A DNA stretch of 64,000 nucleotides from Auanema rhodensis (taxonomy: Eukaryota; Animalia; Nematoda), in assembly GCA_964057225.1 (NCBI GenBank), contig OZ059896.1, positions 10,788,001-10,852,000 of the forward strand. The letters run 5' to 3'. This document shows, piece by piece, positions 6,464 through 36,703 of the stretch (position 1 is the stretch's first letter; every line of letters starts with the position of its first letter). The translations under genes and the position numbers were made by a program. Under the pieces are notes generated by a model, which saw nothing but the letters and a program-made list of their open reading frames with translations, was not told the DNA's origin and did not search any database.

Positions 6464-9792
<3,329 letters not shown>

Positions 9793-11243: not shown

Positions 11244-12582
11244 CTATATGTCTTTTTTTATATTTTCTTTCTGTGAAGTTGTGTTTTCTTCAGTGGTTTT
11301 GTCGGTGCTCTTGCGGAAACGACGGAATAGTTGATGACAGCAGGAAAAGTCTAGAAAAACTGATTTGCATTGTTCAGATTTTGTATCATACCTTGTGCTG
11401 AGCAACATGAAAGTTGCCCGAAAACAAATCTAGATGCTGGCTGCGCAGGTTGGAAAGCGAACTTGAAGAAATTCTTTAGTGTAATATTTTTTCAAAAAGT
11501 TACCTGTGGTGGAATGATAGACTGGCAAGCAGCACCAATACATGGTGGAGAAGGAGCTTGGAAAACAATCTGAATTTAAAATTTAAAGTTTCACTGCTCT
11601 CTGAAGTTGTTCTGACCTTTGGTGGTGGAGGAGCACAAGCAACACCTACACATGGAGGTGGTGGAGGAGCACAAGCAACTCCTACGCATGGGGGTGGTGG
11701 GGGAGCTTGGAAGATAACCTATTTAGAACGTTTAGTGTTAAATTCAATTTTAAAATAATGAGTGTTACCTTTGGTGGTGGAGGAGCACAAGCAACTCCTA
11801 CACATGGAGGTGGTGGAGGAGCACAAGCAACTCCTACACATGGAGGTGGTGGAGGAGCACAAGCAACTCCTACGCATGGAGGTGGTGGGGGAGCTTGGAA
11901 GATAACCTATTTAGAACGTTTAGTGTTAAGTTCAATTTTAAAATGATGAGTGTTACCTTTGGTGGTGGAGGAGCACAAGCAACTCCTACACATGGAGGTG
12001 GTGGGGGTGCTTGGAAGATAACCTATTTAGAAATTAATTTGTTTTATACTATTAAGCTCAATATTACTTGCGGTGGCGCTGGAGCACAAGCAACTCCTAC
12101 GCATGGAGGTGGTGGTGGGGGTTGGAAGACAACCTGAATAGAAACTTTTGTATTGAATATATTATTCTGTATAATATTACTTGAGGTCTTGGAGGACCAC
12201 AGGCAACTCCTACGCACGGAGAGGGAGGAAGAGCTTGGAATAAAACCTAAATTTAGTAAGACTTTAAGACTGAGATCCCAGCGTAGTACCTTAGGTGGTG
12301 AAGGAGCACAAGCAACTCCGACGCATGGAGGAGGAGGAGCCTGAAGAATAACCTGAAAAATCTATGAAATTGGATGTTAATTCAAACTCACTTGTGGAGG
12401 AGAGCACGCTGTTCCGAAGCATGGTGGATTCAGAATTGGAGCTGGCATAGCAAATATCTAGAAATATATAATAAATATATTTTAATATTTCATAACCAGG
12501 TGGTATGTACCCTTTGACCACAGTTATGACATGGTTGAGCTGTTACAGCAGCTACAGAAATCAACAAAAGAATGATGTTCAT
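11244..12582 (-). CDS. Secreted Pro/Cys-rich repeat protein (PPPPPCVGVACA repeats), probably cuticle/ECM
   Basis: Signal peptide MNIILLLISVAAVTA, then repeated phase-0 exons V(I/V)FQAPPPPPCVGVACAPPPPK and a C-terminal LSCCSAQDFSCCHQLFRRFRK..*. Confidence 0.8.
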
Positions 12583-13915
12583 TTCTAAAAAAACAATGAT
12601 ATACAATGAATATTTTTATAAAATTCAGTAAAAATGCTATTAATTATTTGAAAAGGAGCAGAGCCAATGAAAATTGTGGATGTGAATTTTGGCGTGATAA
12701 GCATGTCTTTTATAGTTGTCGAGGCAAGCCAAGTATCTGGTCATTCGCAAAAAAACAGGATGGACATATAGTGAAGTGAAGTAGCTCCAGAATCCGAAGC
12801 TAATACTGGATGGAATTTTCGTGTAAAATAAACAGAACAGTTTCTGTTTGCGAAAACGAATCTTTAATTATGCTGTAGTTTATTCTACCTAGGTTTATAT
12901 TATGTGATTAATTATTCAATTATGTATTTTTTTCTATCTTTATATTACTTAGAATTTCTTTTTTTTTTAAGAATTTTCGCATTCTGCTTAATCATTATAG
13001 CACATTGAAAAATTGCTAAAGTTGCTTAGCTTATTTTTTTAATTTCAAATTTTTACTATATCTTGCTTTACATTAAAACTGTATTTATTTCTGATGTTAA
13101 ATAACTTTAAAATTACACAAATTGTTCAAAGCTGGTATTTCAAAACAAAAAGCATGTCTATGGACATCTTGATGAGCAGTTTCCGTATTCTTGTCATCTT
13201 CAAAATTTAAGCATCCCTTGTTCCAACTTGAAATGTTATCATTGACCAGTCGCCTAGCTTTATTTGAACAGTTTTGCCACCCGAACTCATACATATGTGT
13301 CTCACACAATTGGATGATTTGTTTAAACATTGTTGACAGCTTAAAGAACAAATCAACCTTCGCTCGAAAATAAACTGGACAAATCTTTATGCCTATATAT
13401 TAATATTCTATTCAAAGAAAATGCTTTACTGCCCTAATGTTTTTATATAATTAATACTTTCCCAGATACACTTTCAACACTTGCGGTGCATGTTCCATGC
13501 TGCTCACTTGAACCTATTATGGCGAAGGTGATAGAAAGTGACTTAATTCAAACCTCCAGATTAATTTAATTAATTGTAACTTGTTCAGTAAGGGTATACG
13601 ATTAAATGTAATTTAGTATATATAAACAAACAAACAATAGCAATATTATTTATCACAAAATAAAAAAAGTACATTGCTTAATCATTTGAATAATCAATGA
13701 TGTCATAATTTAACTTTGAAAAATAGTTCAAATATAACAAGTTTATGATGATATTTGGTTCCACCTGTGAAATTCCCGAATTTGAGCAAGCTGGAAAAAG
13801 CGTTGTGTCAAAATAGTGTTAGTTTTCTGATAATTAAATACAAAAAAACAGGATTTATTCAATTTTCAATTGTATAATAAAGGATATTATATTTGAACTA
13901 TGCCAAATATCTAAG

Positions 13916-13924
13916 TATATAAAG
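13916..13924 (+). promoter_or_regulatory. TATA box (TATATAAAG) of the array gene, repeated in every unit
   Basis: About 40 bp upstream of ATG 13959; AATAAA poly(A) signal at 14560-14565 downstream of the stop. Confidence 0.7.
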
Positions 13925-13958
13925 GGGGACATATTCCTCAATATTCAACAACTTCAAC

Positions 13959-14477
13959 ATGAAGTTAATCATTCTATTCGTTTCCGTCCTCGGCATCTAC
14001 TCATCACCAGGTTTTTTTTGTTTCTTACCTAATTTTCATTGACTGTTTTTAGTGACTCGTGAATCCCAGAGACAAACTTCTGTCGATCCATTCGGAAGCA
14101 CTTCCAAAACCCCACTTGATGCCAGCACCGTCGATCCTTTAGGAAGTATCACTGATTTACCAATTGATGCCAGCACCGTCGATCCATTCGGAAGTATCAC
14201 TGATTTACCAATTGATGCCAGCACCGTCGATCCATTCGGAAGCACTTCCAAAACCCCAATTGATGCCAGCACCGTCGATCCTTTAGGAAGTATCACTGAT
14301 TTACCAATTGATGCCAGCACCGTCGATCCATTCGGAAGTATCACTGATTTACCAATTGATGCCAGCACCGTCGATCCAGTCGGAAGCAACTCCAACTCAC
14401 CTAGTGTTGGAACTACCGTCGATACTTTGGGAAATGTTTCTAACGGACCTGTTGATGGTACTACGATTGCAGCATAA
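13959..14477 (+). CDS. Secreted 16-aa-module protein, copy 1 (6 modules, 158 aa)
   Basis: Exon 1 MKLIILFVSVLGIYSSP(G|gt) joined across a 42-nt GT..TTTTAG intron in frame to VTRESQRQTS-(VDPxGSxxxxPIDAST)n-tail*. Confidence 0.85.
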
Positions 14478-14828
14478 ATCTGTTCATGACAAGTCTGTGT
14501 AAGAAAGCTTAGTTTTTCACTCAGATGTGATGATAATTGTATTTGAATTGTATATTTATAATAAAACGAAATCAATTTACTTTACGTTCATTTGTAAAAA
14601 TATTAATTACATAAAAACAATAAGGCAGCAAAGCGATGTATGAAGAAATATTTTAAAGTTCAGTAGCTAGTCTAATCATATATTCAAAGTAGTTAGTATA
14701 CAATTTATATCAAACCTGATATATAATAACACATAATAGAGGCAGGTTATATTTTTTAAAGCACCATCTTTGAGACAAAGCTTGAGCATATGTCAACGCT
14801 ATCGCACTCCCAAATACAAGAAAACTGT

Positions 14829-15202
14829 TTAAAGATGTTTGTATTTCAAAAAGAGAAGATGAAGAAGACGCATTGTGCTCTGAAAATTTATAAAATAGTG
14901 TGCAAAATGTAAAAGAAATAGACCTTGAGATCACCATTAGCGATATCTTGAACTCGACTTTTGGGTTTTGGAAGTCCAGCTTCTTCTATCAACTTGAATG
15001 CAAAACTAATGTTTTTAATCTTGTCCTCGAATGATTTAGCCTTAAGAAAAAAAATGTGGAGAGGAACAAAATATCCTTCCAGCAGTCCCATCAATAAAAC
15101 GAGAAAAACGCCATCTTGAAATTGATATTCCATGCTGCTCACTTGAACCTATTATGGCGAAGGTGATAGAAAGTGACTTAATTCAAACCTCCAGATTAAT
15201 TT
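14829..15202 (-). pseudogene. Promoterless 3' fragment of pat-6 (last two exons), copy 1
   Basis: Matches pat-6 30648-31021 and breaks off at CAGATTAATTT. Confidence 0.85.
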
Positions 15203-15593
15203 AATTAATTGTAACTTGTTCAGTAAGGGTATACGATTAAATGTAATTTAGTATATATAAACAAACAAACAATAGCAATATTATTTATCACAAAATAAAA
15301 AAAGTACATTGCTTAATCATTTGAATAATCAATGATGTCATAATTTAACTTTGAAAAATAGTTCAAATATAACAAGTTTATGATGATATTTGGTTCCACC
15401 TGTGAAATTCCCGAATTTGAGCAAGCTGGAAAAAGCGTTGTGTCAAAATAGTGTTAGTTTTCTGATAATTAAATACAAAAAAACAGGATTTATTCAATTT
15501 TCAATTGTATAATAAAGGATATTATATTTGAACTATGCCAAATATCTAAGTATATAAAGGGGGACATATTCCTCAATATTCAACAACTTCAAC

Positions 15594-16352
15594 ATGAAGT
15601 TAATCATTCTATTCGTTTCCGTCCTCGGCATCTACTCATCACCAGGTTTTTTTTGTTTCTTACCTAATTTTCATTGACTGTTTTTAGTGACTCGTGAATC
15701 CCAGAGACAAACTTCTGTCGATCCATTCGGAAGCACTTCCAAAACCCCACTTGATGCCAGCACCGTCGATCCTTTAGGAAGTATCACTGATTTACCAATT
15801 GATGCCAGCACCGTCGATCCATTCGGAAGTATCACTGATTTACCAATTGATGCCAGCACCGTCGATCCATTCGGAAGTATCACTGATTTACCAATTGATG
15901 CCAGCACCGTCGATCCAATCGGAAGTATCACTGATTCACCGATTGATGCCAGCACCGATGATCTTATAAGAATTATCACACCTATGACGCCTGAAGCCTT
16001 GACCGTCGATCCATTCGGAAGCAGTTCCAAAACCCCAATTGATGCCAGCACCGTCGATCCTTTAGGAAGTATCACTGATTTACCAATTGATGCCAGCACC
16101 GTCGATCCATTCGGAAGTATCACTGATTCACCGATTGATGCCAGCACCGTCGATCCTTTAGGAAGCACTTGCAAAACCCCAATTGATGCCAGCACCGTCG
16201 ATCCATTCGGAAGTATCACTGATTTACCAATTGATGCCAGCACCGTCGATCCAGTCGGAAGCAACTCCAACTCACCTAGTGTTGGAACTACCGTCGATAC
16301 TTTGGGAAATGTTTCTAACGGACCTGTTGATGGTACTACGATTGCAGCATAA
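15594..16352 (+). CDS. Secreted 16-aa-module protein, copy 2 (11 modules, including divergent DDLIRIITPMTPEALT; 238 aa)
   Basis: Same two-exon structure, open frame. Confidence 0.85.
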
Positions 16353-16703
16353 ATCTGTTCATGACAAGTCTGTGTAAGAAAGCTTAGTTTTTCACTCAGA
16401 TGTGATGATAATTGTATTTGAATTGTATATTTATAATAAAACGAAATCAATTTACTTTACGTTCATTTGTAAAAATATTAATTACATAAAAACAATAAGG
16501 CAGCAAAGCGATGTATGAAGAAATATTTTAAAGTTCAGTAGCTAGTCTAATCATATATTCAAAGTAGTTAGTATACAATTTATATCAAACCTGATATATA
16601 ATAACACATAATAGAGGCAGGTTATATTTTTTAAAGCACCATCTTTGAGACAAAGCTTGAGCATATGTCAACGCTATCGCACTCCCAAATACAAGAAAAC
16701 TGT

Positions 16704-17077
16704 TTAAAGATGTTTGTATTTCAAAAAGAGAAGATGAAGAAGACGCATTGTGCTCTGAAAATTTATAAAATAGTGTGCAAAATGTAAAAGAAATAGACCT
16801 TGAGATCACCATTAGCGATATCTTGAACTCGACTTTTGGGTTTTGGAAGTCCAGCTTCTTCTATCAACTTGAATGCAAAACTAATGTTTTTAATCTTGTC
16901 CTCGAATGATTTAGCCTTAAGAAAAAAAATGTGGAGAGGAACAAAATATCCTTCCAGCAGTCCCATCAATAAAACGAGAAAAACGCCATCTTGAAATTGA
17001 TATTCCATGCTGCTCACTTGAACCTATTATGGCGAAGGTGATAGAAAGTGACTTAATTCAAACCTCCAGATTAATTT
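16704..17077 (-). pseudogene. pat-6 3' fragment, copy 2
   Basis: As copy 1. Confidence 0.85.
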
Positions 17078-17468
17078 AATTAATTGTAACTTGTTCAGTA
17101 AGGGTATACGATTAAATGTAATTTAGTATATATAAACAAACAAACAATAGCAATATTATTTATCACAAAATAAAAAAAGTACATTGCTTAATCATTTGAA
17201 TAATCAATGATGTCATAATTTAACTTTGAAAAATAGTTCAAATATAACAAGTTTATGATGATATTTGGTTCCACCTGTGAAATTCCCGAATTTGAGCAAG
17301 CTGGAAAAAGCGTTGTGTCAAAATAGTGTTAGTTTTCTGATAATTAAATACAAAAAAACAGGATTTATTCAATTTTCAATTGTATAATAAAGGATATTAT
17401 ATTTGAACTATGCCAAATATCTAAGTATATAAAGGGGGACATATTCCTCAATATTCAACAACTTCAAC

Positions 17469-17939
17469 ATGAAGTTAATCATTCTATTCGTTTCCGTCCT
17501 CGGCATCTACTCATCACCAGGTTTTTTTTGTTTCTTACCTAATTTTCATTGACTGTTTTTAGTGACTCGTGAATCCCAGAGACAAACTTCTGTCGATCCA
17601 TTCGGAAGCACTTCCAAAACCCCACTTGATGCCAGCACCGTCGATCCAGTCGGAAGCACTTCCAAAACCCCAATTGATGCCAGCACCGTCGATTCATTCG
17701 GAAGTATCACTGATTTACCAATTGATGCCAGCACCGTCGATCCTTTAGGAAGCACTTCCAAAACCCCAATTGATGCCAGCACCGTCGATCCATTCGGAAG
17801 CACTTCCAAAACCCCAATTGATGCCAGCCCCGTCGATCCAGTCGGAAGCAACTCCAACTCACCTAGTGTTGGAACTACCGTCGATACTTTGGGAAATGTT
17901 TCTAACGGACCTGTTGATGGTACTACGATTGCAGCATAA
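17469..17939 (+). CDS. Secreted 16-aa-module protein, copy 3 (5 modules, 142 aa)
   Basis: Same structure; carries VDPVGSTSKT and VDSFGSITDL variant modules. Confidence 0.85.
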
Positions 17940-18290
17940 ATCTGTTCATGACAAGTCTGTGTAAGAAAGCTTAGTTTTTCACTCAGATGTGATGATAATT
18001 GTATTTGAATTGTATATTTATAATAAAACGAAATCAATTTACTTTACGTTCATTTGTAAAAATATTAATTACATAAAAACAATAAGGCAGCAAAGCGATG
18101 TATGAAGAAATATTTTAAAGTTCAGTAGCTAGTCTAATCATATATTCAAAGTAGTTAGTATACAATTTATATCAAACCTGATATATAATAACACATAATA
18201 GAGGCAGGTTATATTTTTTAAAGCACCATCTTTGAGACAAAGCTTGAGCATATGTCAACGCTATCGCACTCCCAAATACAAGAAAACTGT

Positions 18291-18664
18291 TTAAAGATGT
18301 TTGTATTTCAAAAAGAGAAGATGAAGAAGACGCATTGTGCTCTGAAAATTTATAAAATAGTGTGCAAAATGTAAAAGAAATAGACCTTGAGATCACCATT
18401 AGCGATATCTTGAACTCGACTTTTGGGTTTTGGAAGTCCAGCTTCTTCTATCAACTTGAATGCAAAACTAATGTTTTTAATCTTGTCCTCGAATGATTTA
18501 GCCTTAAGAAAAAAAATGTGGAGAGGAACAAAATATCCTTCCAGCAGTCCCATCAATAAAACGAGAAAAACGCCATCTTGAAATTGATATTCCATGCTGC
18601 TCACTTGAACCTATTATGGCGAAGGTGATAGAAAGTGACTTAATTCAAACCTCCAGATTAATTT
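18291..18664 (-). pseudogene. pat-6 3' fragment, copy 3
   Basis: As copy 1. Confidence 0.85.
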
Positions 18665-19055
18665 AATTAATTGTAACTTGTTCAGTAAGGGTATACGATT
18701 AAATGTAATTTAGTATATATAAACAAACAAACAATAGCAATATTATTTATCACAAAATAAAAAAAGTACATTGCTTAATCATTTGAATAATCAATGATGT
18801 CATAATTTAACTTTGAAAAATAGTTCAAATATAACAAGTTTATGATGATATTTGGTTCCACCTGTGAAATTCCCGAATTTGAGCAAGCTGGAAAAAGCGT
18901 TGTGTCAAAATAGTGTTAGTTTTCTGATAATTAAATACAAAAAAACAGGATTTATTCAATTTTCAATTGTATAATAAAGGATATTATATTTGAACTATGC
19001 CAAATATCTAAGTATATAAAGGGGGACATATTCCTCAATATTCAACAACTTCAAC

Positions 19056-19670
19056 ATGAAGTTAATCATTCTATTCGTTTCCGTCCTCGGCATCTACTCA
19101 TCACCAGGTTTTTTTTGTTTCTTACCTAATTTTCATTGACTGTTTTTAGTGACTCGTGAATCCCAGAGACAAACTTCTGTCGATCCATTCGGAAGCACTT
19201 CCAAAACCCCACTTGATGCCAGCACCGTCGATCCTTTAGGAAGTATCACTGATTTACCAATTGATGCCAGCACCGTCGATCCATTCGGAAGTATCACTGA
19301 TTTACCAATTGATGCCAGCACCGTCGATCCATTCGGAAGCACTTCCAAAACCCCAATTGATGCCAGCACCGTCGATCCATTCGGAAGTATCACTGATTTA
19401 CCAATTGATGCCAGCACCGTCGATCCATTCGGAAGTATCACTGATTTACCAATTGATGCCAGCACCGTCGATCCTTTAGGAAGCACTTCCAAAACCCCAA
19501 TTGATGCCAGCACCGTCGATCCATTCGGAAGCACTTCCAAAACCCCAATTGATGCCAGCACCGTCGATCCAGTCGGAAGCAACTCCAACTCACCTAGTGT
19601 TGGAACTACCGTCGATACTTTGGGAAATGTTTCTAACGGACCTGTTGATGGTACTACGATTGCAGCATAA
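19056..19670 (+). CDS. Secreted 16-aa-module protein, copy 4 (8 modules, 190 aa)
   Basis: Same structure, open frame. Confidence 0.85.
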
Positions 19671-20021
19671 ATCTGTTCATGACAAGTCTGTGTAAGAAAG
19701 CTTAGTTTTTCACTCAGATGTGATGATAATTGTATTTGAATTGTATATTTATAATAAAACGAAATCAATTTACTTTACGTTCATTTGTAAAAATATTAAT
19801 TACATAAAAACAATAAGGCAGCAAAGCGATGTATGAAGAAATATTTTAAAGTTCAGTAGCTAGTCTAATCATATATTCAAAGTAGTTAGTATACAATTTA
19901 TATCAAACCTGATATATAATAACACATAATAGAGGCAGGTTATATTTTTTAAAGCACCATCTTTGAGACAAAGCTTGAGCATATGTCAACGCTATCGCAC
20001 TCCCAAATACAAGAAAACTGT

Positions 20022-20395
20022 TTAAAGATGTTTGTATTTCAAAAAGAGAAGATGAAGAAGACGCATTGTGCTCTGAAAATTTATAAAATAGTGTGCAAAA
20101 TGTAAAAGAAATAGACCTTGAGATCACCATTAGCGATATCTTGAACTCGACTTTTGGGTTTTGGAAGTCCAGCTTCTTCTATCAACTTGAATGCAAAACT
20201 AATGTTTTTAATCTTGTCCTCGAATGATTTAGCCTTAAGAAAAAAAATGTGGAGAGGAACAAAATATCCTTCCAGCAGTCCCATCAATAAAACGAGAAAA
20301 ACGCCATCTTGAAATTGATATTCCATGCTGCTCACTTGAACCTATTATGGCGAAGGTGATAGAAAGTGACTTAATTCAAACCTCCAGATTAATTT
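20022..20395 (-). pseudogene. pat-6 3' fragment, copy 4
   Basis: As copy 1. Confidence 0.85.
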
Positions 20396-20786
20396 AATTA
20401 ATTGTAACTTGTTCAGTAAGGGTATACGATTAAATGTAATTTAGTATATATAAACAAACAAACAATAGCAATATTATTTATCACAAAATAAAAAAAGTAC
20501 ATTGCTTAATCATTTGAATAATCAATGATGTCATAATTTAACTTTGAAAAATAGTTCAAATATAACAAGTTTATGATGATATTTGGTTCCACCTGTGAAA
20601 TTCCCGAATTTGAGCAAGCTGGAAAAAGCGTTGTGTCAAAATAGTGTTAGTTTTCTGATAATTAAATACAAAAAAACAGGATTTATTCAATTTTCAATTG
20701 TATAATAAAGGATATTATATTTGAACTATGCCAAATATCTAAGTATATAAAGGGGGACATATTCCTCAATATTCAACAACTTCAAC

Positions 20787-21401
20787 ATGAAGTTAATCAT
20801 TCTATTCGTTTCCGTCCTCGGCATCTACTCATCACCAGGTTTTTTTTGTTTCTTACCTAATTTTCATTGACTGTTTTTAGTGACTCGTGAATCCCAGAGA
20901 CAAACTTCTGTCGATCCATTCGGAAGCACTTCCAAAACCCCACTTGATGCCAGCACCGTCGATCCTTTAGGAAGTATCACTGATTTACCAATTGATGCCA
21001 GCACCGTCGATCCATTCGGAAGTATCACTGATTTACCAATTGATGCCAGCACCGTCGATCCATTCGGAAGTATCACTGATTTACCAATTGATGCCAGCAC
21101 CGTCGATCCATTCGGAAGTATCACTGATTTACCAATTGATGCCAGCACCGTCGATCCATTCGGAAGTATCACTGATTTACCAATTGATGCCAGCACCGTC
21201 GATCCTTTAGGAAGCACTTCCAAAACCCCAATTGATGCCAGCACCGTCGATCCATTCGGAAGCACTTCCAAAACCCCAATTGATGCCAGCACCGTCGATC
21301 CAGTCGGAAGCAACTCCAACTCACCTAGTGTTGGAACTACCGTCGATACTTTGGGAAATGTTTCTAACGGACCTGTTGATGGTACTACGATTGCAGCATA
21401 A
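20787..21401 (+). CDS. Secreted 16-aa-module protein, copy 5 (8 modules, 190 aa; module 4 differs from copy 4)
   Basis: Same structure, open frame. Confidence 0.85.
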
Positions 21402-21752
21402 ATCTGTTCATGACAAGTCTGTGTAAGAAAGCTTAGTTTTTCACTCAGATGTGATGATAATTGTATTTGAATTGTATATTTATAATAAAACGAAATCAAT
21501 TTACTTTACGTTCATTTGTAAAAATATTAATTACATAAAAACAATAAGGCAGCAAAGCGATGTATGAAGAAATATTTTAAAGTTCAGTAGCTAGTCTAAT
21601 CATATATTCAAAGTAGTTAGTATACAATTTATATCAAACCTGATATATAATAACACATAATAGAGGCAGGTTATATTTTTTAAAGCACCATCTTTGAGAC
21701 AAAGCTTGAGCATATGTCAACGCTATCGCACTCCCAAATACAAGAAAACTGT

Positions 21753-22126
21753 TTAAAGATGTTTGTATTTCAAAAAGAGAAGATGAAGAAGACGCATTGT
21801 GCTCTGAAAATTTATAAAATAGTGTGCAAAATGTAAAAGAAATAGACCTTGAGATCACCATTAGCGATATCTTGAACTCGACTTTTGGGTTTTGGAAGTC
21901 CAGCTTCTTCTATCAACTTGAATGCAAAACTAATGTTTTTAATCTTGTCCTCGAATGATTTAGCCTTAAGAAAAAAAATGTGGAGAGGAACAAAATATCC
22001 TTCCAGCAGTCCCATCAATAAAACGAGAAAAACGCCATCTTGAAATTGATATTCCATGCTGCTCACTTGAACCTATTATGGCGAAGGTGATAGAAAGTGA
22101 CTTAATTCAAACCTCCAGATTAATTT
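21753..22126 (-). pseudogene. pat-6 3' fragment, copy 5
   Basis: As copy 1. Confidence 0.85.
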
Positions 22127-22517
22127 AATTAATTGTAACTTGTTCAGTAAGGGTATACGATTAAATGTAATTTAGTATATATAAACAAACAAACAATAGC
22201 AATATTATTTATCACAAAATAAAAAAAGTACATTGCTTAATCATTTGAATAATCAATGATGTCATAATTTAACTTTGAAAAATAGTTCAAATATAACAAG
22301 TTTATGATGATATTTGGTTCCACCTGTGAAATTCCCGAATTTGAGCAAGCTGGAAAAAGCGTTGTGTCAAAATAGTGTTAGTTTTCTGATAATTAAATAC
22401 AAAAAAACAGGATTTATTCAATTTTCAATTGTATAATAAAGGATATTATATTTGAACTATGCCAAATATCTAAGTATATAAAGGGGGACATATTCCTCAA
22501 TATTCAACAACTTCAAC

Positions 22518-23276
22518 ATGAAGTTAATCATTCTATTCGTTTCCGTCCTCGGCATCTACTCATCACCAGGTTTTTTTTGTTTCTTACCTAATTTTCATTG
22601 ACTGTTTTTAGTGACTCGTGAATCCCAGAGACAAACTTCTGTCGATCCATTCGGAAGCACTTCCAAAACCCCACTTGATGCCAGCACCGTCGATCCTTTA
22701 GGAAGTATCACTGATTTACCAATTGATGCCAGCACCGTCGATCCATTCGGAAGTATCACTGATTTACCAATTGATGCCAGCACCGTCGATCCATTCGGAA
22801 GTATCACTGATTTACCAATTGATGCCAGCACCGTCGATCCATTCGGAAGTATCACTGATTCACCGATTGATGCCAGCACCGATGATCTTATAAGAATTAT
22901 CACACCTATGACGCCTGAAGCCTTGACCGTCGATCCATTCGGAAGCAGTTCCAAAACCCCAATTGATGCCAGCACCGTCGATCCTTTAGGAAGTATCACT
23001 GATTTACCAATTGATGCCAGCACCGTCGATCCATTCGGAAGTATCACTGATTTACCAATTGATGCCAGCACCGTCGATCCATTCGGAAGTATCACTGATT
23101 TACCAATTGATGCCAGCACCGTCGATCCATTCGGAAGTATCACTGATTTACCAATTGATGCCAGCACCGTCGATCCAGTCGGAAGCAACTCCAACTCACC
23201 TAGTGTTGGAACTACCGTCGATACTTTGGGAAATGTTTCTAACGGACCTGTTGATGGTACTACGATTGCAGCATAA
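22518..23276 (+). CDS. Secreted 16-aa-module protein, copy 6 (11 modules, including the divergent module; 238 aa)
   Basis: Same structure, open frame. Confidence 0.85.
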
Positions 23277-23627
23277 ATCTGTTCATGACAAGTCTGTGTA
23301 AGAAAGCTTAGTTTTTCACTCAGATGTGATGATAATTGTATTTGAATTGTATATTTATAATAAAACGAAATCAATTTACTTTACGTTCATTTGTAAAAAT
23401 ATTAATTACATAAAAACAATAAGGCAGCAAAGCGATGTATGAAGAAATATTTTAAAGTTCAGTAGCTAGTCTAATCATATATTCAAAGTAGTTAGTATAC
23501 AATTTATATCAAACCTGATATATAATAACACATAATAGAGGCAGGTTATATTTTTTAAAGCACCATCTTTGAGACAAAGCTTGAGCATATGTCAACGCTA
23601 TCGCACTCCCAAATACAAGAAAACTGT

Positions 23628-24001
23628 TTAAAGATGTTTGTATTTCAAAAAGAGAAGATGAAGAAGACGCATTGTGCTCTGAAAATTTATAAAATAGTGT
23701 GCAAAATGTAAAAGAAATAGACCTTGAGATCACCATTAGCGATATCTTGAACTCGACTTTTGGGTTTTGGAAGTCCAGCTTCTTCTATCAACTTGAATGC
23801 AAAACTAATGTTTTTAATCTTGTCCTCGAATGATTTAGCCTTAAGAAAAAAAATGTGGAGAGGAACAAAATATCCTTCCAGCAGTCCCATCAATAAAACG
23901 AGAAAAACGCCATCTTGAAATTGATATTCCATGCTGCTCACTTGAACCTATTATGGCGAAGGTGATAGAAAGTGACTTAATTCAAACCTCCAGATTAATT
24001 T
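23628..24001 (-). pseudogene. pat-6 3' fragment, copy 6
   Basis: As copy 1. Confidence 0.85.
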
Positions 24002-24392
24002 AATTAATTGTAACTTGTTCAGTAAGGGTATACGATTAAATGTAATTTAGTATATATAAACAAACAAACAATAGCAATATTATTTATCACAAAATAAAAA
24101 AAGTACATTGCTTAATCATTTGAATAATCAATGATGTCATAATTTAACTTTGAAAAATAGTTCAAATATAACAAGTTTATGATGATATTTGGTTCCACCT
24201 GTGAAATTCCCGAATTTGAGCAAGCTGGAAAAAGCGTTGTGTCAAAATAGTGTTAGTTTTCTGATAATTAAATACAAAAAAACAGGATTTATTCAATTTT
24301 CAATTGTATAATAAAGGATATTATATTTGAACTATGCCAAATATCTAAGTATATAAAGGGGGACATATTCCTCAATATTCAACAACTTCAAC

Positions 24393-24911
24393 ATGAAGTT
24401 AATCATTCTATTCGTTTCCGTCCTCGGCATCTACTCATCACCAGGTTTTTTTTGTTTCTTACCTAATTTTCATTGACTGTTTTTAGTGACTCGTGAATCC
24501 CAGAGACAAACTTCTGTCGATCCATTCGGAAGCACTTCCAAAACCCCACTTGATGCCAGCACCGTCGATCCTTTAGGAAGTATCACTGATTTACCAATTG
24601 ATGCCAGCACCGTCGATCCATTCGGAAGTATCACTGATTTACCAATTGATGCCAGCACCGTCGATCCATTCGGAAGCACTTCCAAAACCCCAATTGATGC
24701 CAGCACCGTCGATCCTTTAGGAAGTATCACTGATTTACCAATTGATGCCAGCACCGTCGATCCATTCGGAAGTATCACTGATTTACCAATTGATGCCAGC
24801 ACCGTCGATCCAGTCGGAAGCAACTCCAACTCACCTAGTGTTGGAACTACCGTCGATACTTTGGGAAATGTTTCTAACGGACCTGTTGATGGTACTACGA
24901 TTGCAGCATAA
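24393..24911 (+). CDS. Secreted 16-aa-module protein, copy 7 (6 modules; same protein as copy 1)
   Basis: Same structure, open frame. Confidence 0.85.
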
Positions 24912-25262
24912 ATCTGTTCATGACAAGTCTGTGTAAGAAAGCTTAGTTTTTCACTCAGATGTGATGATAATTGTATTTGAATTGTATATTTATAATAAAA
25001 CGAAATCAATTTACTTTACGTTCATTTGTAAAAATATTAATTACATAAAAACAATAAGGCAGCAAAGCGATGTATGAAGAAATATTTTAAAGTTCAGTAG
25101 CTAGTCTAATCATATATTCAAAGTAGTTAGTATACAATTTATATCAAACCTGATATATAATAACACATAATAGAGGCAGGTTATATTTTTTAAAGCACCA
25201 TCTTTGAGACAAAGCTTGAGCATATGTCAACGCTATCGCACTCCCAAATACAAGAAAACTGT

Positions 25263-25636
25263 TTAAAGATGTTTGTATTTCAAAAAGAGAAGATGAAGAA
25301 GACGCATTGTGCTCTGAAAATTTATAAAATAGTGTGCAAAATGTAAAAGAAATAGACCTTGAGATCACCATTAGCGATATCTTGAACTCGACTTTTGGGT
25401 TTTGGAAGTCCAGCTTCTTCTATCAACTTGAATGCAAAACTAATGTTTTTAATCTTGTCCTCGAATGATTTAGCCTTAAGAAAAAAAATGTGGAGAGGAA
25501 CAAAATATCCTTCCAGCAGTCCCATCAATAAAACGAGAAAAACGCCATCTTGAAATTGATATTCCATGCTGCTCACTTGAACCTATTATGGCGAAGGTGA
25601 TAGAAAGTGACTTAATTCAAACCTCCAGATTAATTT
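25263..25636 (-). pseudogene. pat-6 3' fragment, copy 7
   Basis: As copy 1. Confidence 0.85.
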
Positions 25637-26027
25637 AATTAATTGTAACTTGTTCAGTAAGGGTATACGATTAAATGTAATTTAGTATATATAAACAAAC
25701 AAACAATAGCAATATTATTTATCACAAAATAAAAAAAGTACATTGCTTAATCATTTGAATAATCAATGATGTCATAATTTAACTTTGAAAAATAGTTCAA
25801 ATATAACAAGTTTATGATGATATTTGGTTCCACCTGTGAAATTCCCGAATTTGAGCAAGCTGGAAAAAGCGTTGTGTCAAAATAGTGTTAGTTTTCTGAT
25901 AATTAAATACAAAAAAACAGGATTTATTCAATTTTCAATTGTATAATAAAGGATATTATATTTGAACTATGCCAAATATCTAAGTATATAAAGGGGGACA
26001 TATTCCTCAATATTCAACAACTTCAAC

Positions 26028-26546
26028 ATGAAGTTAATCATTCTATTCGTTTCCGTCCTCGGCATCTACTCATCACCAGGTTTTTTTTGTTTCTTACCTA
26101 ATTTTCATTGACTGTTTTTAGTGACTCGTGAATCCCAGAGACAAACTTCTGTCGATCCATTCGGAAGCACTTCCAAAACCCCACTTGATGCCAGCACCGT
26201 CGATCCTTTAGGAAGTATCACTGATTTACCAATTGATGCCAGCACCGTCGATCCATTCGGAAGTATCACTGATTTACCAATTGATGCCAGCACCGTCGAT
26301 CCATTCGGAAGCACTTCCAAAACCCCAATTGATGCCAGCACCGTCGATCCTTTAGGAAGTATCACTGATTTACCAATTGATGCCAGCACCGTCGATCCAT
26401 TCGGAAGTATCACTGATTTACCAATTGATGCCAGCACCGTCGATCCAGTCGGAAGCAACTCCAACTCACCTAGTGTTGGAACTACCGTCGATACTTTGGG
26501 AAATGTTTCTAACGGACCTGTTGATGGTACTACGATTGCAGCATAA
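26028..26546 (+). CDS. Secreted 16-aa-module protein, copy 8 (6 modules; same protein as copy 1)
   Basis: Same structure, open frame. Confidence 0.85.
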
Positions 26547-26897
26547 ATCTGTTCATGACAAGTCTGTGTAAGAAAGCTTAGTTTTTCACTCAGATGTGAT
26601 GATAATTGTATTTGAATTGTATATTTATAATAAAACGAAATCAATTTACTTTACGTTCATTTGTAAAAATATTAATTACATAAAAACAATAAGGCAGCAA
26701 AGCGATGTATGAAGAAATATTTTAAAGTTCAGTAGCTAGTCTAATCATATATTCAAAGTAGTTAGTATACAATTTATATCAAACCTGATATATAATAACA
26801 CATAATAGAGGCAGGTTATATTTTTTAAAGCACCATCTTTGAGACAAAGCTTGAGCATATGTCAACGCTATCGCACTCCCAAATACAAGAAAACTGT

Positions 26898-27271
26898 TTA
26901 AAGATGTTTGTATTTCAAAAAGAGAAGATGAAGAAGACGCATTGTGCTCTGAAAATTTATAAAATAGTGTGCAAAATGTAAAAGAAATAGACCTTGAGAT
27001 CACCATTAGCGATATCTTGAACTCGACTTTTGGGTTTTGGAAGTCCAGCTTCTTCTATCAACTTGAATGCAAAACTAATGTTTTTAATCTTGTCCTCGAA
27101 TGATTTAGCCTTAAGAAAAAAAATGTGGAGAGGAACAAAATATCCTTCCAGCAGTCCCATCAATAAAACGAGAAAAACGCCATCTTGAAATTGATATTCC
27201 ATGCTGCTCACTTGAACCTATTATGGCGAAGGTGATAGAAAGTGACTTAATTCAAACCTCCAGATTAATTT
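26898..27271 (-). pseudogene. pat-6 3' fragment, copy 8
   Basis: As copy 1. Confidence 0.85.
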
Positions 27272-27662
27272 AATTAATTGTAACTTGTTCAGTAAGGGTA
27301 TACGATTAAATGTAATTTAGTATATATAAACAAACAAACAATAGCAATATTATTTATCACAAAATAAAAAAAGTACATTGCTTAATCATTTGAATAATCA
27401 ATGATGTCATAATTTAACTTTGAAAAATAGTTCAAATATAACAAGTTTATGATGATATTTGGTTCCACCTGTGAAATTCCCGAATTTGAGCAAGCTGGAA
27501 AAAGCGTTGTGTCAAAATAGTGTTAGTTTTCTGATAATTAAATACAAAAAAACAGGATTTATTCAATTTTCAATTGTATAATAAAGGATATTATATTTGA
27601 ACTATGCCAAATATCTAAGTATATAAAGGGGGACATATTCCTCAATATTCAACAACTTCAAC

Positions 27663-28469
27663 ATGAAGTTAATCATTCTATTCGTTTCCGTCCTCGGCAT
27701 CTACTCATCACCAGGTTTTTTTTGTTTCTTACCTAATTTTCATTGACTGTTTTTAGTGACTCGTGAATCCCAGAGACAAACTTCTGTCGATCCATTCGGA
27801 AGCACTTCCAAAACCCCACTTGATGCCAGCACCGTCGATCCTTTAGGAAGTATCACTGATTTACCAATTGATGCCAGCACCGTCGATCCATTCGGAAGTA
27901 TCACTGATTTACCAATTGATGCCAGCACCGTCGATCCATTCGGAAGTATCACTGATTTACCAATTGATGCCAGCACCGTCGATCCATTCGGAAGTATCAC
28001 TGATTTACCAATTGATGCCAGCACCGTCGATCCATTCGGAAGTATCACTGATTCACCGATTGATGCCAGCACCGATGATCTTATAAGAATTATCACACCT
28101 ATGACGCCTGAAGCCTTGACCGTCGATCCATTCGGAAGCAGTTCCAAAACCCCAATTGATGCCAGCACCGTCGATCCTTTAGGAAGTATCACTGATTTAC
28201 CAATTGATGCCAGCACCGTCGATCCATTCGGAAGTATCACTGATTTACCAATTGATGCCAGCACCGTCGATCCATTCGGAAGTATCACTGATTTACCAAT
28301 TGATGCCAGCACCGTCGATCCATTCGGAAGTATCACTGATTTACCAATTGATGCCAGCACCGTCGATCCAGTCGGAAGCAACTCCAACTCACCTAGTGTT
28401 GGAACTACCGTCGATACTTTGGGAAATGTTTCTAACGGACCTGTTGATGGTACTACGATTGCAGCATAA
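27663..28469 (+). CDS. Secreted 16-aa-module protein, copy 9 (12 modules, including the divergent module; 254 aa)
   Basis: Same structure, open frame. Confidence 0.85.
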
Positions 28470-28820
28470 ATCTGTTCATGACAAGTCTGTGTAAGAAAGC
28501 TTAGTTTTTCACTCAGATGTGATGATAATTGTATTTGAATTGTATATTTATAATAAAACGAAATCAATTTACTTTACGTTCATTTGTAAAAATATTAATT
28601 ACATAAAAACAATAAGGCAGCAAAGCGATGTATGAAGAAATATTTTAAAGTTCAGTAGCTAGTCTAATCATATATTCAAAGTAGTTAGTATACAATTTAT
28701 ATCAAACCTGATATATAATAACACATAATAGAGGCAGGTTATATTTTTTAAAGCACCATCTTTGAGACAAAGCTTGAGCATATGTCAACGCTATCGCACT
28801 CCCAAATACAAGAAAACTGT

Positions 28821-29194
28821 TTAAAGATGTTTGTATTTCAAAAAGAGAAGATGAAGAAGACGCATTGTGCTCTGAAAATTTATAAAATAGTGTGCAAAAT
28901 GTAAAAGAAATAGACCTTGAGATCACCATTAGCGATATCTTGAACTCGACTTTTGGGTTTTGGAAGTCCAGCTTCTTCTATCAACTTGAATGCAAAACTA
29001 ATGTTTTTAATCTTGTCCTCGAATGATTTAGCCTTAAGAAAAAAAATGTGGAGAGGAACAAAATATCCTTCCAGCAGTCCCATCAATAAAACGAGAAAAA
29101 CGCCATCTTGAAATTGATATTCCATGCTGCTCACTTGAACCTATTATGGCGAAGGTGATAGAAAGTGACTTAATTCAAACCTCCAGATTAATTT
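28821..29194 (-). pseudogene. pat-6 3' fragment, copy 9
   Basis: As copy 1. Confidence 0.85.
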
Positions 29195-29585
29195 AATTAA
29201 TTGTAACTTGTTCAGTAAGGGTATACGATTAAATGTAATTTAGTATATATAAACAAACAAACAATAGCAATATTATTTATCACAAAATAAAAAAAGTACA
29301 TTGCTTAATCATTTGAATAATCAATGATGTCATAATTTAACTTTGAAAAATAGTTCAAATATAACAAGTTTATGATGATATTTGGTTCCACCTGTGAAAT
29401 TCCCGAATTTGAGCAAGCTGGAAAAAGCGTTGTGTCAAAATAGTGTTAGTTTTCTGATAATTAAATACAAAAAAACAGGATTTATTCAATTTTCAATTGT
29501 ATAATAAAGGATATTATATTTGAACTATGCCAAATATCTAAGTATATAAAGGGGGACATATTCCTCAATATTCAACAACTTCAAC

Positions 29586-30296
29586 ATGAAGTTAATCATT
29601 CTATTCGTTTCCGTCCTCGGCATCTACTCATCACCAGGTTTTTTTTGTTTCTTACCTAATTTTCATTGACTGTTTTTAGTGACTCGTGAATCCCAGAGAC
29701 AAACTTCTGTCGATCCATTCGGAAGCACTTCCAAAACCCCACTTGATGCCAGCACCGTCGATCCAGTCGGAAGCACTTCCAAAACCCCAATTGATGCCAG
29801 CACCGTCGATTCATTCGGAAGTATCACTGATTTACCAATTGATGCCAGCACCGTCGATCCTTTAGGAAGCACTTCCAAAACCCCACTTGATGCCAGCACC
29901 GTCGATCCAGTCGGAAGCACTTCCAAAACCCCAATTGATGCCAGCACCGTCGATTCATTCGGAAGTATCACTGATTTACCAATTGATGCCAGCACCGTCG
30001 ATCCTTTAGGAAGCACTTCCAAAACCCCAATTGATGCCAGCACCGTCGATTCATTCGGAAGTATCACTGATTTACCAATTGATGCCAGCACCGTCGATCC
30101 TTTAGGAAGCACTTCCAAAACCCCAATTGATGCCAGCACCGTCGATCCATTCGGAAGCACTTCCAAAACCCCAATTGATGCCAGCACTGTCGATCCAGTC
30201 GGAAGCAACTCCAACTCACCTAGTGTTGGAACTACCGTCGATACTTTGGGAAATGTTTCTAACGGACCTGTTGATGGTACTACGATTGCAGCATAA
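29586..30296 (+). CDS. Secreted 16-aa-module protein, copy 10 (10 modules, 222 aa; expanded copy-3 type)
   Basis: Same structure, open frame. Confidence 0.85.
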
Positions 30297-30647
30297 ATCT
30301 GTTCATGACAAGTCTGTGTAAGAAAGCTTAGTTTTTCACTCAGATGTGATGATAATTGTATTTGAATTGTATATTTATAATAAAACGAAATCAATTTACT
30401 TTACGTTCATTTGTAAAAATATTAATTACATAAAAACAATAAGGCAGCAAAGCGATGTATGAAGAAATATTTTAAAGTTCAGTAGCTAGTCTAATCATAT
30501 ATTCAAAGTAGTTAGTATACAATTTATATCAAACCTGATATATAATAACACATAATAGAGGCAGGTTATATTTTTTAAAGCACCATCTTTGAGACAAAGC
30601 TTGAGCATATGTCAACGCTATCGCACTCCCAAATACAAGAAAACTGT

Positions 30648-32309
30648 TTAAAGATGTTTGTATTTCAAAAAGAGAAGATGAAGAAGACGCATTGTGCTCT
30701 GAAAATTTATAAAATAGTGTGCAAAATGTAAAAGAAATAGACCTTGAGATCACCATTAGCGATATCTTGAACTCGACTTTTGGGTTTTGGAAGTCCAGCT
30801 TCTTCTATCAACTTGAATGCAAAACTAATGTTTTTAATCTTGTCCTCGAATGATTTAGCCTTAAGAAAAAAAATGTGGAGAGGAACAAAATATCCTTCCA
30901 GCAGTCCCATCAATAAAACGAGAAAAACGCCATCTTGAAATTGATATTCCATGCTGCTCACTTGAACCTATTATGGCGAAGGTGATAGAAAGTGACTTAA
31001 TTCAAACCTCCAGATTAATTTTGTTCAAATGTCTGTTACAAAACGTAATAAGAGATTCTTTTACTTGAGCTAGTTTATCTGGACCAAAATCAAACAATGT
31101 GTCGAAAGCATCACGATCTCCCTGAATAAAGCAATGATAAATTAAAAAATATATATTTGTAAATACCTTTAAACCGAGTTCATCTTGTGTAGTAGTTAAT
31201 TGTTCAACAGCATTTTCAGTTTTGATATGTCCTTGCTGTTTAGAAGCAATGACCATCTTTAAATATTTGATTTATAGCCATAATAGAAAATAAAGTATTA
31301 CTTTAGCTGATACATATTCTGGAAGACGAATGGGAGCACGGAAATGAATAGCAAGAGCGATCAGAAATTGCAAAATTGCCACAAGATCCTAGAAAATTCA
31401 AAAAGTTTAAAGAAATTTGAAATCAGAACGACCTTCGAGTGGATGAGTTCTGGCGTCCACTTTTGATCATGTTGCCCTTTGCTCAAAAGACGGTTTCCGG
31501 TGGCAATAACAATTTGAAGTTTTTGTCTTTGTCCTTCCTCTGATTGCGAGACCTCAGGAACTTCAATCTGTAAAACAAAAATATGGTTCAAATCCATAAT
31601 AGTATCAAGTTTTACTCTTATGTTCCCCAATTTTTCCACAAGTTTCTGAAGAATTTGACCATCATATAAGTCTTCTTGAACATGACGTACCTGAAGTAAA
31701 AAAATATATAAAATAAAACAATCATTGGTTACAAACATAAAGAAAACAGTAGAAATTGTCAACAACTTGTAGTGTATTTTTATTTTTTAAATAAAATAAA
31801 CTTCATAAATTAACAAACTTACGACAATACGCTGATCAGCAAGCTCCTCATTGAGCCAATGCACAAGAAGATATATTAGTTCTCTCATTTTAGGATCATT
31901 ATTAGTTTCCTTCGTAATGAAACGAACAGTTTCGCCTAGAATTCATATTGATAATTATAATCAACATGTTTTCCTACCTTCATCTATGATAATATCTTTG
32001 GCTAAATATGGAACTGTGGCAGAATCCAAAGCTTCACGACCTTCAATGTCAACCTTAACGAATAAGAAAATGAAAAGTAACCGAATCAAAAATAATAAAT
32101 TTACCTCCACAGCCTCATTCTCCTCATTCTCTTCGTTATTTTCATTAACTGGCTTCTTTTTTTTTCGTGTTAAGGTTCCGGTAAGTTTCTCCACAAACGA
32201 TTCATTCTTTTCAAAATATGTAATAAATATACGCATATTATTAAAAAATTACTTTTTGGCTTTTCATGGTATCTGCAGGGCCTGTGCTTTTTCTTCCCAG
32301 AGTTGACAT
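30648..32309 (-). CDS. pat-6: Parvin/actopaxin (two calponin-homology domains)
   Basis: MSTLGRK..FVEKLTGTLTRKKK, WLNEELADQRIVVRHVQEDLYDGQILQKL, IEVPEVSQSEEGQRQKL, RDAFDTLFDFGPDKL, QFQDGVFLVLLMGLLEGYFVPL and DIANGDLKSTMRLLHLLFLKYKHL*. Confidence 0.95.

Positions 32310-32647: not shown

Positions 32648-36703
<4,056 letters not shown>

Follow-up and report, generated by a model that had tools for sequence, protein, structure and literature searches.

A 64,000-nucleotide window of the genome of the nematode Auanema rhodensis (GenBank assembly GCA_964057225.1, contig OZ059896.1, forward-strand positions 10,788,001 to 10,852,000) contains ten head-to-tail copies of a gene that is predicted to encode a small secreted protein with a variable number of 16-residue modules. 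The array, which lies at positions 13493 to 31021 (all positions are those of the window), belongs to a known class, that of young tandem gene arrays with an internal coding minisatellite, and its protein is an orphan with no relative among 1.84 billion representative proteins. We think it likely that the locus is a young or homogenized array of a lineage-specific secreted-protein gene that has been diversified by ordinary minisatellite recombination. About 25 module-level changes separate the ten paralogues, versus 0 substitutions in 13.5 kb of linked sequence that includes nine nonfunctional fragments of an essential gene, and the locus permits a direct estimate of the ratio between the rearrangement rate and the point mutation rate.

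Layout and copy number of the array

The array consists of 10 units of 1587 to 1923 bp each plus one extra 75-bp bracket (10.05 units), and the unit spacings are, in order, 1635, 1875, 1587, 1731, 1731, 1875, 1635, 1635, and 1923 bp. An earlier note on this DNA, made from the letters alone, had described ten tandem units of this build, and the same coordinates and module counts were recovered here. Each unit has a TATA box, a 52-nt exon 1 for the signal peptide, a predicted 42-nt intron, an invariant head of 10 residues, 5 to 12 variable 48-bp modules, two invariant tail modules, and an AATAAA signal. Exon 1 has exactly 10 matches, all on the plus strand, with ATGs at the starts of the gene copies listed below, and Tandem Repeats Finder (TRF) picks out ten tracts of 48-bp repeats, all of which show a 144-bp higher order. 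No further full or partial copies of the gene were found elsewhere in the window. Exon 1 and the intron (GT..TTTTTAG) are identical in 10 of 10 copies, as is the head. Nor is there any variation in module A, which opens every run, or in E and F, the two degenerate modules of the tail. After the predicted splice, all ten frames are open and give 8 distinct proteins, copies 1, 7, and 8 being the same, which agrees with the earlier description.

Each unit further contains the two final exons of the parvin gene pat-6 in minus-strand orientation, a point that the earlier note overlooked. The 75-bp bracket is itself a piece of pat-6, namely a 40-nt intron flanked by 12 nt of the preceding exon and by the first part of the penultimate exon, and the bracket at the left edge of the array is an eleventh copy of the unit's right end. 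The features are listed here with the variable modules counted apart from the two tail modules, which come on top.

13493 to 31021, plus strand: whole array (TRF, exon 1 positions, and bracket positions).
13493 to 13567, minus strand: first of 11 identical 75-bp brackets (repeat positions and junction sequences); the others begin at 15128, 17003, 18590, 20321, 22052, 23927, 25562, 27197, 29120, and 30947.
13916 to 13923, plus strand: TATA box of unit 1, TATATAAA, 36 nt before the ATG and identical in every unit (from the sequence).
13959 to 14477, plus strand: gene copy 1, with exon 1 at 13959 to 14010, the predicted intron at 14011 to 14052, and exon 2 at 14053 to 14477; 158 amino acids (aa); 6 variable modules; string ABCDBCEF.
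15594 to 16352, plus strand: gene copy 2; 238 aa; 11 variable modules; ABCCGHIBJKCEF; private variants G and K.
17469 to 17939, plus strand: gene copy 3; 142 aa; 5 variable modules; ALMNOEF; private variant O.
19056 to 19670, plus strand: gene copy 4; 190 aa; 8 variable modules; ABCDCCNDEF.
20787 to 21401, plus strand: gene copy 5; 190 aa; 8 variable modules; ABCCCCNDEF.
22518 to 23276, plus strand: gene copy 6; 238 aa; 11 variable modules; ABCCJHIBCCCEF.
24393 to 24911, plus strand: gene copy 7; 158 aa; 6 variable modules; same as copy 1.
26028 to 26546, plus strand: gene copy 8; 158 aa; 6 variable modules; same as copy 1.
27663 to 28469, plus strand: gene copy 9; 254 aa; 12 variable modules; ABCCCJHIBCCCEF.
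29586 to 30296, plus strand: gene copy 10; 222 aa; 10 variable modules; ALMPLMNMNQEF; private variants P and Q.
14560 to 14565, plus strand: AATAAA of copy 1 (from the sequence; in each of two runs, the RNA contig stops at 14567).
14624 to 15202, minus strand: dead pat-6 3' fragment of unit 1, identical in units 2 to 9 (open reading frame [ORF], RNA splice 14879^14924, and a CH-domain and alpha-parvin match); its parts are the 3' untranslated region (3'UTR) at 14624 to 14828, the last coding exon at 14829 to 14879, an intron at 14880 to 14923, the penultimate exon at 14924 to 15150, an intron at 15151 to 15190, and 12 nt of the exon before.
30443 to about 32230 (upstream end approximate), minus strand: functional pat-6 (colinear with a relative's pat-6; mRNA contig).

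Long minus-strand ORFs (179 to 275 aa) also run across the repeats. They were rejected as genes, as they start with TTG, have no ATG, and have neither a signal peptide nor gene signals.

Copy number was checked with the contigs of a 2019 DNA run, X1, from pooled worms that may be of the source strain; these contigs were aligned to the left flank and unit 1, and their word depth is only a rough measure. The single-copy flank contig has a word depth of 61.5, and the unit contigs have depths of 635.4, 666.8, and 677.8, or 10.3-, 10.8-, and 11.0-fold that of the flank. The 11.0-fold depth is that of the 75-bp bracket, of which the assembly has 11 copies. Unitigs of single module types follow the assembly as well (A, 12.1-fold versus 11; B, 15.2-fold versus 14; the core shared by B, C, and M, 39.8-fold versus 45), and the spacer contigs of 577 nt and 810 nt are unbranched. 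A depth of about 10 to 11 times the flank excludes a single-copy or few-copy artifact, and the copy number has support from reads. It is therefore hardly conceivable that a single- or few-copy gene, or a set of allelic variants, was wrongly expanded to ten units, even though perfect spacer identity is unusual and the unit order is taken from the assembly, without spanning reads. Also, if the window belongs to the published 2026 A. rhodense assembly, that assembly was made from PacBio HiFi reads of the inbred line APS4.

Some X1 contigs have loose ends at 13969, 14566, and 14819 that run on into sequence that is not in the window, the one at 14566 lying at the same place as the RNA contig ends. 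Possible sources are incomplete copies at other genomic sites, a structural variant carried by some of the units, and chimeras among the contigs. Another run, X16, was considered as a source of a relative and was rejected as carry-over, having a word share of 0.06, one identical 151-nt contig at depth 2, and one 36-nt match with 5 differences.

Spacer identity and module variation

The identity of the pat-6 fragments rests on protein matches and on RNA. The minus-strand ORF at 14888 to 15142 matches the second CH domain (CH2) of parvins, as evidenced by a Pfam CH score of 27.5 bits (cutoff, 26) and by phmmer matches in PDB to alpha-parvin (E, 4e-27) and beta-parvin (E, 1e-24). Two sequencing runs were taken as RNA because they contain spliced pat-6: their contigs join 14879 to 14924 across a minus-strand GT..AG intron, the last exon ends at 14829, and the 3'UTR extends to 14624. 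A loose RNA end at 15150 shows splicing of the 40-nt intron, and the pat-6 mRNA contig continues into the sequence at 31022 and beyond. In functional pat-6, the last two exons and the 3'UTR (30443 to 31021) form the right end of unit 10, and the upstream exons occupy 31022 to about 32230. Since only unit 10 is joined to upstream pat-6, the duplicated segment must have consisted of the secreted-protein gene, the last two pat-6 exons, and 12 nt of the exon before. The fragments in units 1 to 9 are promoterless and dead. All nine keep intact splice acceptors and a 3'UTR, are identical to the functional 3' end, and stand tail to tail with the plus-strand genes, with a gap of 56 nt between the RNA 3' end of the secreted-protein gene and the convergent pat-6 3' end at 14624.

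Outside the modules, the units do not differ at all. The 466 bp upstream and the 650 bp downstream of the coding region are identical in 10 of 10 units, and the flanks together with exon 1, the intron, the head, and the tail give 0 differences in 13,470 bp, the nine dead pat-6 fragments included. Because these fragments cannot be under selection, the spacer identity reflects recency or homogenization and not constraint; the array is very young or homogenized. With a C. elegans-like mutation rate (2.7e-9, a literature value), the mean lineage age is bounded at about 8e4 generations (95%). It also follows that ten open frames carry no information on selection, as the array is too young for decay and all length differences between copies are multiples of 48 bp.

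The modules tell of a different tempo. They take the form VDP[FLVI]GS(ITDL/TSKT)P[IL]DAST, and regular modules vary at two slots, namely positions 9 to 12, which encode Phe, Leu, Val, or Ile, and positions 18 to 30, which encode ITDL or TSKT; a few single-base variants come in addition. Most module types are recombinants of the two slot states. Apart from a few point changes, all differences between copies are in-register gains, losses, and conversions of 48 bp, the pattern of a coding minisatellite. The module strings form four groups ({1,7,8}, {2,6,9}, {4,5}, and {3,10}). Of the neighboring units, 7 and 8 do not differ and 4 and 5 are one conversion apart, and a three-unit duplication is suggested by the same order of groups in units 1-2-3 and 8-9-10. 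A minimum spanning tree of the strings takes about 25 module edits, and we estimate that the required event rate is at least about 1e-5 per gene per generation. A rate of about 1e-5 per gene per generation lies in the range of ordinary minisatellite instability. The degenerate tail modules E and F differ from C at 15 and 18 of 48 positions, respectively.

The probable history is as follows. The founding duplication took in a segment with the secreted-protein gene and the 3' end of convergent pat-6, and unequal exchange between identical 1.1-kb spacers then raised the number of units to ten, some amplification steps copying several units together. The copy differences probably came from homology-directed events in the 48-bp coding minisatellite, namely replication slippage, unequal exchange between sisters or homologues, and short gene conversion tracts. 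Such events are always in register, which keeps the frame automatically, and they would be far more frequent than point mutation, so that the repeats have diverged and the spacers have not.

Positions 13423 to 13460, just left of the array, match positions 14597 to 14634, in the within-unit spacer between the convergent 3' ends, in inverted orientation over 38 bp (87% identity; E, about 1e-6). The match may have been left behind by the founding rearrangement, or the two sites may have a small element in common.

The earlier note had proposed a candidate new diversification system, and on this point our analysis departs from it. Taken in the sense of the "HVD editing" once proposed for the HYP effectors of cyst nematodes, that proposal would mean that a locus-specific mechanism shuffles or mutates the modules into a recognition or coat repertoire. 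Perfectly invariant flanks around rearranged module arrays would suit such a mechanism, as would the confinement of the four private point variants to the modules (P = 0.003, weighed below), and the two-slot grammar with fixed first and last modules recalls the HYP "rules" (PMC11228951). Nevertheless, no dedicated machinery, template, or donor cassette was found in or beside the units: they hold only the gene and the dead pat-6 3' fragment, the spacers have no other ORF of at least 90 aa, and there is neither an enzyme nor an asymmetry between donor and acceptor copies. Spontaneous homology-directed rearrangement reproduces every feature, the differences between copies fit unequal exchange and gene conversion, and the HYP1 model case has been withdrawn by its own authors (PMC13577501). 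Moreover, the data come from one inbred genome, with no variation between individuals or somatic cells in view, so that the word "hypervariable," also used in the earlier note, stands for paralogues within one genome only. We consider programmed diversification very improbable. Comparing spacers with modules yields a rate difference but reveals no mechanism, and neither "invariant flanks and variable repeats" nor "all frames open" should be taken as a sign of a diversification system or of selection.

Predicted product, expression, and neighboring genes

The predicted signal peptide, MKLIILFVSVLGIYSSP, has MK at its start, a 12-residue hydrophobic core (mean Kyte-Doolittle value, 2.3 to 3.4), and SSP as a polar c-region, as read from the sequence. 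The mature protein would have 125 to 237 aa, a pI (isoelectric point) of about 4, 28 to 35% Ser plus Thr, 10 to 11% Pro, and 13 to 15% Asp. It lacks Trp and Tyr, is essentially free of Cys, has one NVS sequon in the tail, and has regularly spaced hydrophobic residues. As a tandem repeat rich in Ser, Thr, and Pro, it has the composition that defines mucin-like proteins, at the low end for mucin domains. Composition and Pfam thus agree with the earlier description of an acidic Ser/Thr/Asp/Pro-rich protein without an anchor or recognizable domain.

Homology searches found no described family. Pfam and PDB gave no family and no relative, the ESM atlas gave no real match (best score, 0.78), and a word-index search with exon 2 of copy 4 gave 0 matches. 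A HMMER scan of copy 3 against 1.84 billion representative proteins returned 58 matches at E <= 0.001, 5 of them at E <= 1e-10, and these were rejected as homologues: eleven of the best that were inspected are unrelated repeat linkers rich in Asp, Pro, Gly, and Ser, including those of a matrixin protease and of a protein sorted by the type IX secretion system. None of the eleven has the head or the tail, most have other periods, and there was no self match. AlphaFold2, run on the single sequence, gave a mean predicted local distance difference test (pLDDT) score of 40.7, which is consistent with disorder but is not proof of it. Ice-nucleation proteins likewise have 16-residue repeats, and a beta-solenoid was considered; nothing was found in support of that fold. 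The product, an orphan, is probably a small secreted protein that is disordered, O-glycosylated, and mucin-like.

Part of the gene is transcribed. Both RNA runs contain a 216-nt contig (14352 to 14567) with the tail modules, the stop codon, and the 3'UTR, which ends 2 nt past the AATAAA, and both contain a 78-nt unitig of the module core. These contigs support a plus-strand transcript with the predicted 3' end. The ratio of core depth to tail depth in RNA is 6.6 to 8.0, versus an array average of 4.5, a hint that expression is dominated by copies 6 and 9, which are long, although contig depth is too crude to rely on.

Several findings weigh against the favored reading, that of a young or homogenized array diversified by ordinary recombination. 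First, exon 1, the intron, and the head are uncovered by RNA contigs, with depth 0 over 13920 to 14095 in both runs, and the splice and the signal peptide are therefore predictions. A plausible cause is loss of 5' ends in the RNA assemblies, given that the pat-6 contig, at 1219 nt, falls about 140 nt short of the expected mRNA, a length summed by hand from the exon matches of a relative. Second, expression is modest in the RNA runs examined: the tail has a depth of about 23 to 25, versus about 190 to 208 for pat-6, or about a ninth, and the "high-dose" product suggested in the earlier note is not evident in these runs. Third, the matches include no orthologue that could show constraint. Fourth, single-base variants private to one copy number four (copy 2 has G and K, copy 3 has O, and copy 10 has Q), and they all fall within 3,984 bp of variable modules, with 0 in the 13,470 bp outside them (P = 0.003 under uniform mutation). 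This clustering hints at a locally raised mutation rate, through recombination-associated mutagenesis, or at selection; it could equally be explained by older variants that were lost from the other copies. Module H, which differs from C at 21 of 48 positions, must predate the amplification. Overall, the module variants comprise about 7 nonsynonymous and 2 synonymous changes, which is unremarkable and close to neutral.

One way to read these points is that the array is a neutral by-product. Here, a neutral or pat-6-region-driven segmental duplication in an inbred laboratory line would have carried along a young, functionless ORF that arose de novo on a minisatellite and is weakly transcribed, and the variation would be without biological meaning. 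Such an account fits the failure of the searches to find a homologue, the lack of a similar gene within 3.5 kb downstream of a relative's pat-6, the near-neutral ratio of changes, and the low RNA depth with its unseen 5' end, and open frames say little against it in a young array whose unit length is divisible by 3. We nevertheless regard it as unlikely. A complete and coherent gene grammar lies on one strand, with a TATA box, an ATG, a signal peptide of textbook form, a 42-nt intron that is correct in phase and ends in the nematode acceptor TTTTTAG, a head and tail outside the repeat, and an AATAAA where the RNA contigs end, and the degeneracy of tail modules E and F implies an older, structured gene.

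Another way is that the 48-bp tract is a genuine local hotspot, at which rearrangement and point mutation both run far above the level of spacers 30 bp distant, owing either to mutagenesis that accompanies recombination or to selection that favors diversity among paralogues of a surface or recognition protein. In our judgment, this is rather unlikely. If true, it would offer an experimentally tractable counterpart of HYP in a culturable free-living nematode, with the dead pat-6 fragments as an internal clock for the neutral rate. Under the favored reading, should the protein prove to be secreted and functional, it would be a lineage-specific secreted product of the probably three-sexed Auanema, one that might serve in the surface coat, in mating, or in the eggshell. 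In other respects, the array is an ordinary example of a well-known class.

Relatives of pat-6 were found by a search with one exon; they are 53 to 75% identical and come from metagenome, Logan, and other assemblies. Two of them, an ENA metagenome scaffold of 5950 nt (L001) and a Logan contig (L003), are complete or partial nematode pat-6 orthologues with the same exon order and a CH2 exon that is 67 to 75% identical. A homologue of the secreted-protein gene was not found within 3.5 kb downstream of pat-6 in these relatives, which are too distant to date the gene.

The wider neighborhood suggests that the array lies in ordinary gene-rich DNA with housekeeping genes. Upstream, N-terminal exons of MCM2 (Pfam MCM2_N) lie at 9100 to 9760 on the minus strand; beyond pat-6, a DEAD-box-like helicase lies at 33500 to 36300, also on the minus strand, as judged from ORF translations, and Pfam gave no family for the one exon tested. 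Between mcm-2 and the array, at 11430 to 12350 on the minus strand, there is a second modular gene-like structure, in which TRF finds 36-bp repeats nested in 111- to 188-bp units. On that strand, these units can be read as short exons, bordered by AG/GT, for a Pro/Cys-rich repeat of the PPPP-CVGVAC type, and the structure may be a gene made of exon-plus-intron modules.

Comparison with known systems

SELF-1 of Pristionchus pacificus is a kin-recognition peptide with a hypervariable region. The analogy was drawn in the earlier note, and the likeness, a small lineage-specific nematode product with a hypervariable part, is one of description only.

The Globodera effectors HYP1 and HYP3 are closer in build (PMC4177990, PMC11228951, PMC13577501). 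Like the array gene, for which secretion and a signal peptide are predicted, they encode nematode secreted proteins in which conserved ends enclose short motifs, all within a single exon, that differ in number and order through flawless in-frame rearrangement, with preferred first and last motifs; the earlier note claimed no homology to them. The differences are also clear. HYP motifs have 5 to 6 residues (YERGGG, SDRGGG, and RDRGD; PMC11228951), versus 16 in the modules of the array, and HYP genes are single-gene loci with allelic variation across a population (PMC11228951), whereas the array has ten tandem paralogues in one genome. HYP1 is described by its authors as a gene of parasitism, and as the secreted-protein gene with the highest expression in that phase (PMC13577501); expression of the array gene is modest in the runs seen. 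As to mechanism, a 2024 proposal was that the HYP effectors undergo programmed "HVD editing" (PMC11228951). Work by that group in 2026, with accurate long reads and a yeast assay, showed that HYP1 alleles are germline alleles of spontaneous origin, and that in yeast the HYP1 repeat loses, gains, and converts motifs in the same flawless in-frame way, through homology-directed repair (PMC13577501). The mechanism now favored for HYP1 is thus homology-directed rearrangement, the same as that proposed here for the array, and the main precedent for reading the array as a new diversification system is removed. With regard to homology, the HMMER scan of 1.84 billion representatives gave only unrelated repeat linkers, the presence of HYP in that library being unconfirmed.

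Secreted proteins encoded by coding minisatellites, or variable-number tandem repeats, include human MUC1, the C. elegans plug mucin plg-1, and the Drosophila Sgs glue genes. Such proteins have a signal peptide, as is predicted for the array protein, and share with it tandem repeats rich in Ser, Thr, and Pro and in-frame change of the repeats by slippage and unequal exchange. They are also disordered and expected to be O-glycosylated, as the array protein probably is, and they are fast-evolving and often lineage specific. Unlike them, the array protein is high in Asp (13 to 15%), has spaced hydrophobic residues, and is small, and its gene is itself amplified tenfold.

Finally, arrays of ribosomal DNA, histone, small nuclear RNA, and macrosatellite genes evolve in concert. 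They resemble this array in their head-to-tail order, in near-identical spacers that are kept so by unequal exchange and conversion, and in duplications of several units at once. Arrays of that kind usually keep their product identical, whereas here the product varies through an internal minisatellite, and each unit carries a dead piece of an essential neighboring gene.

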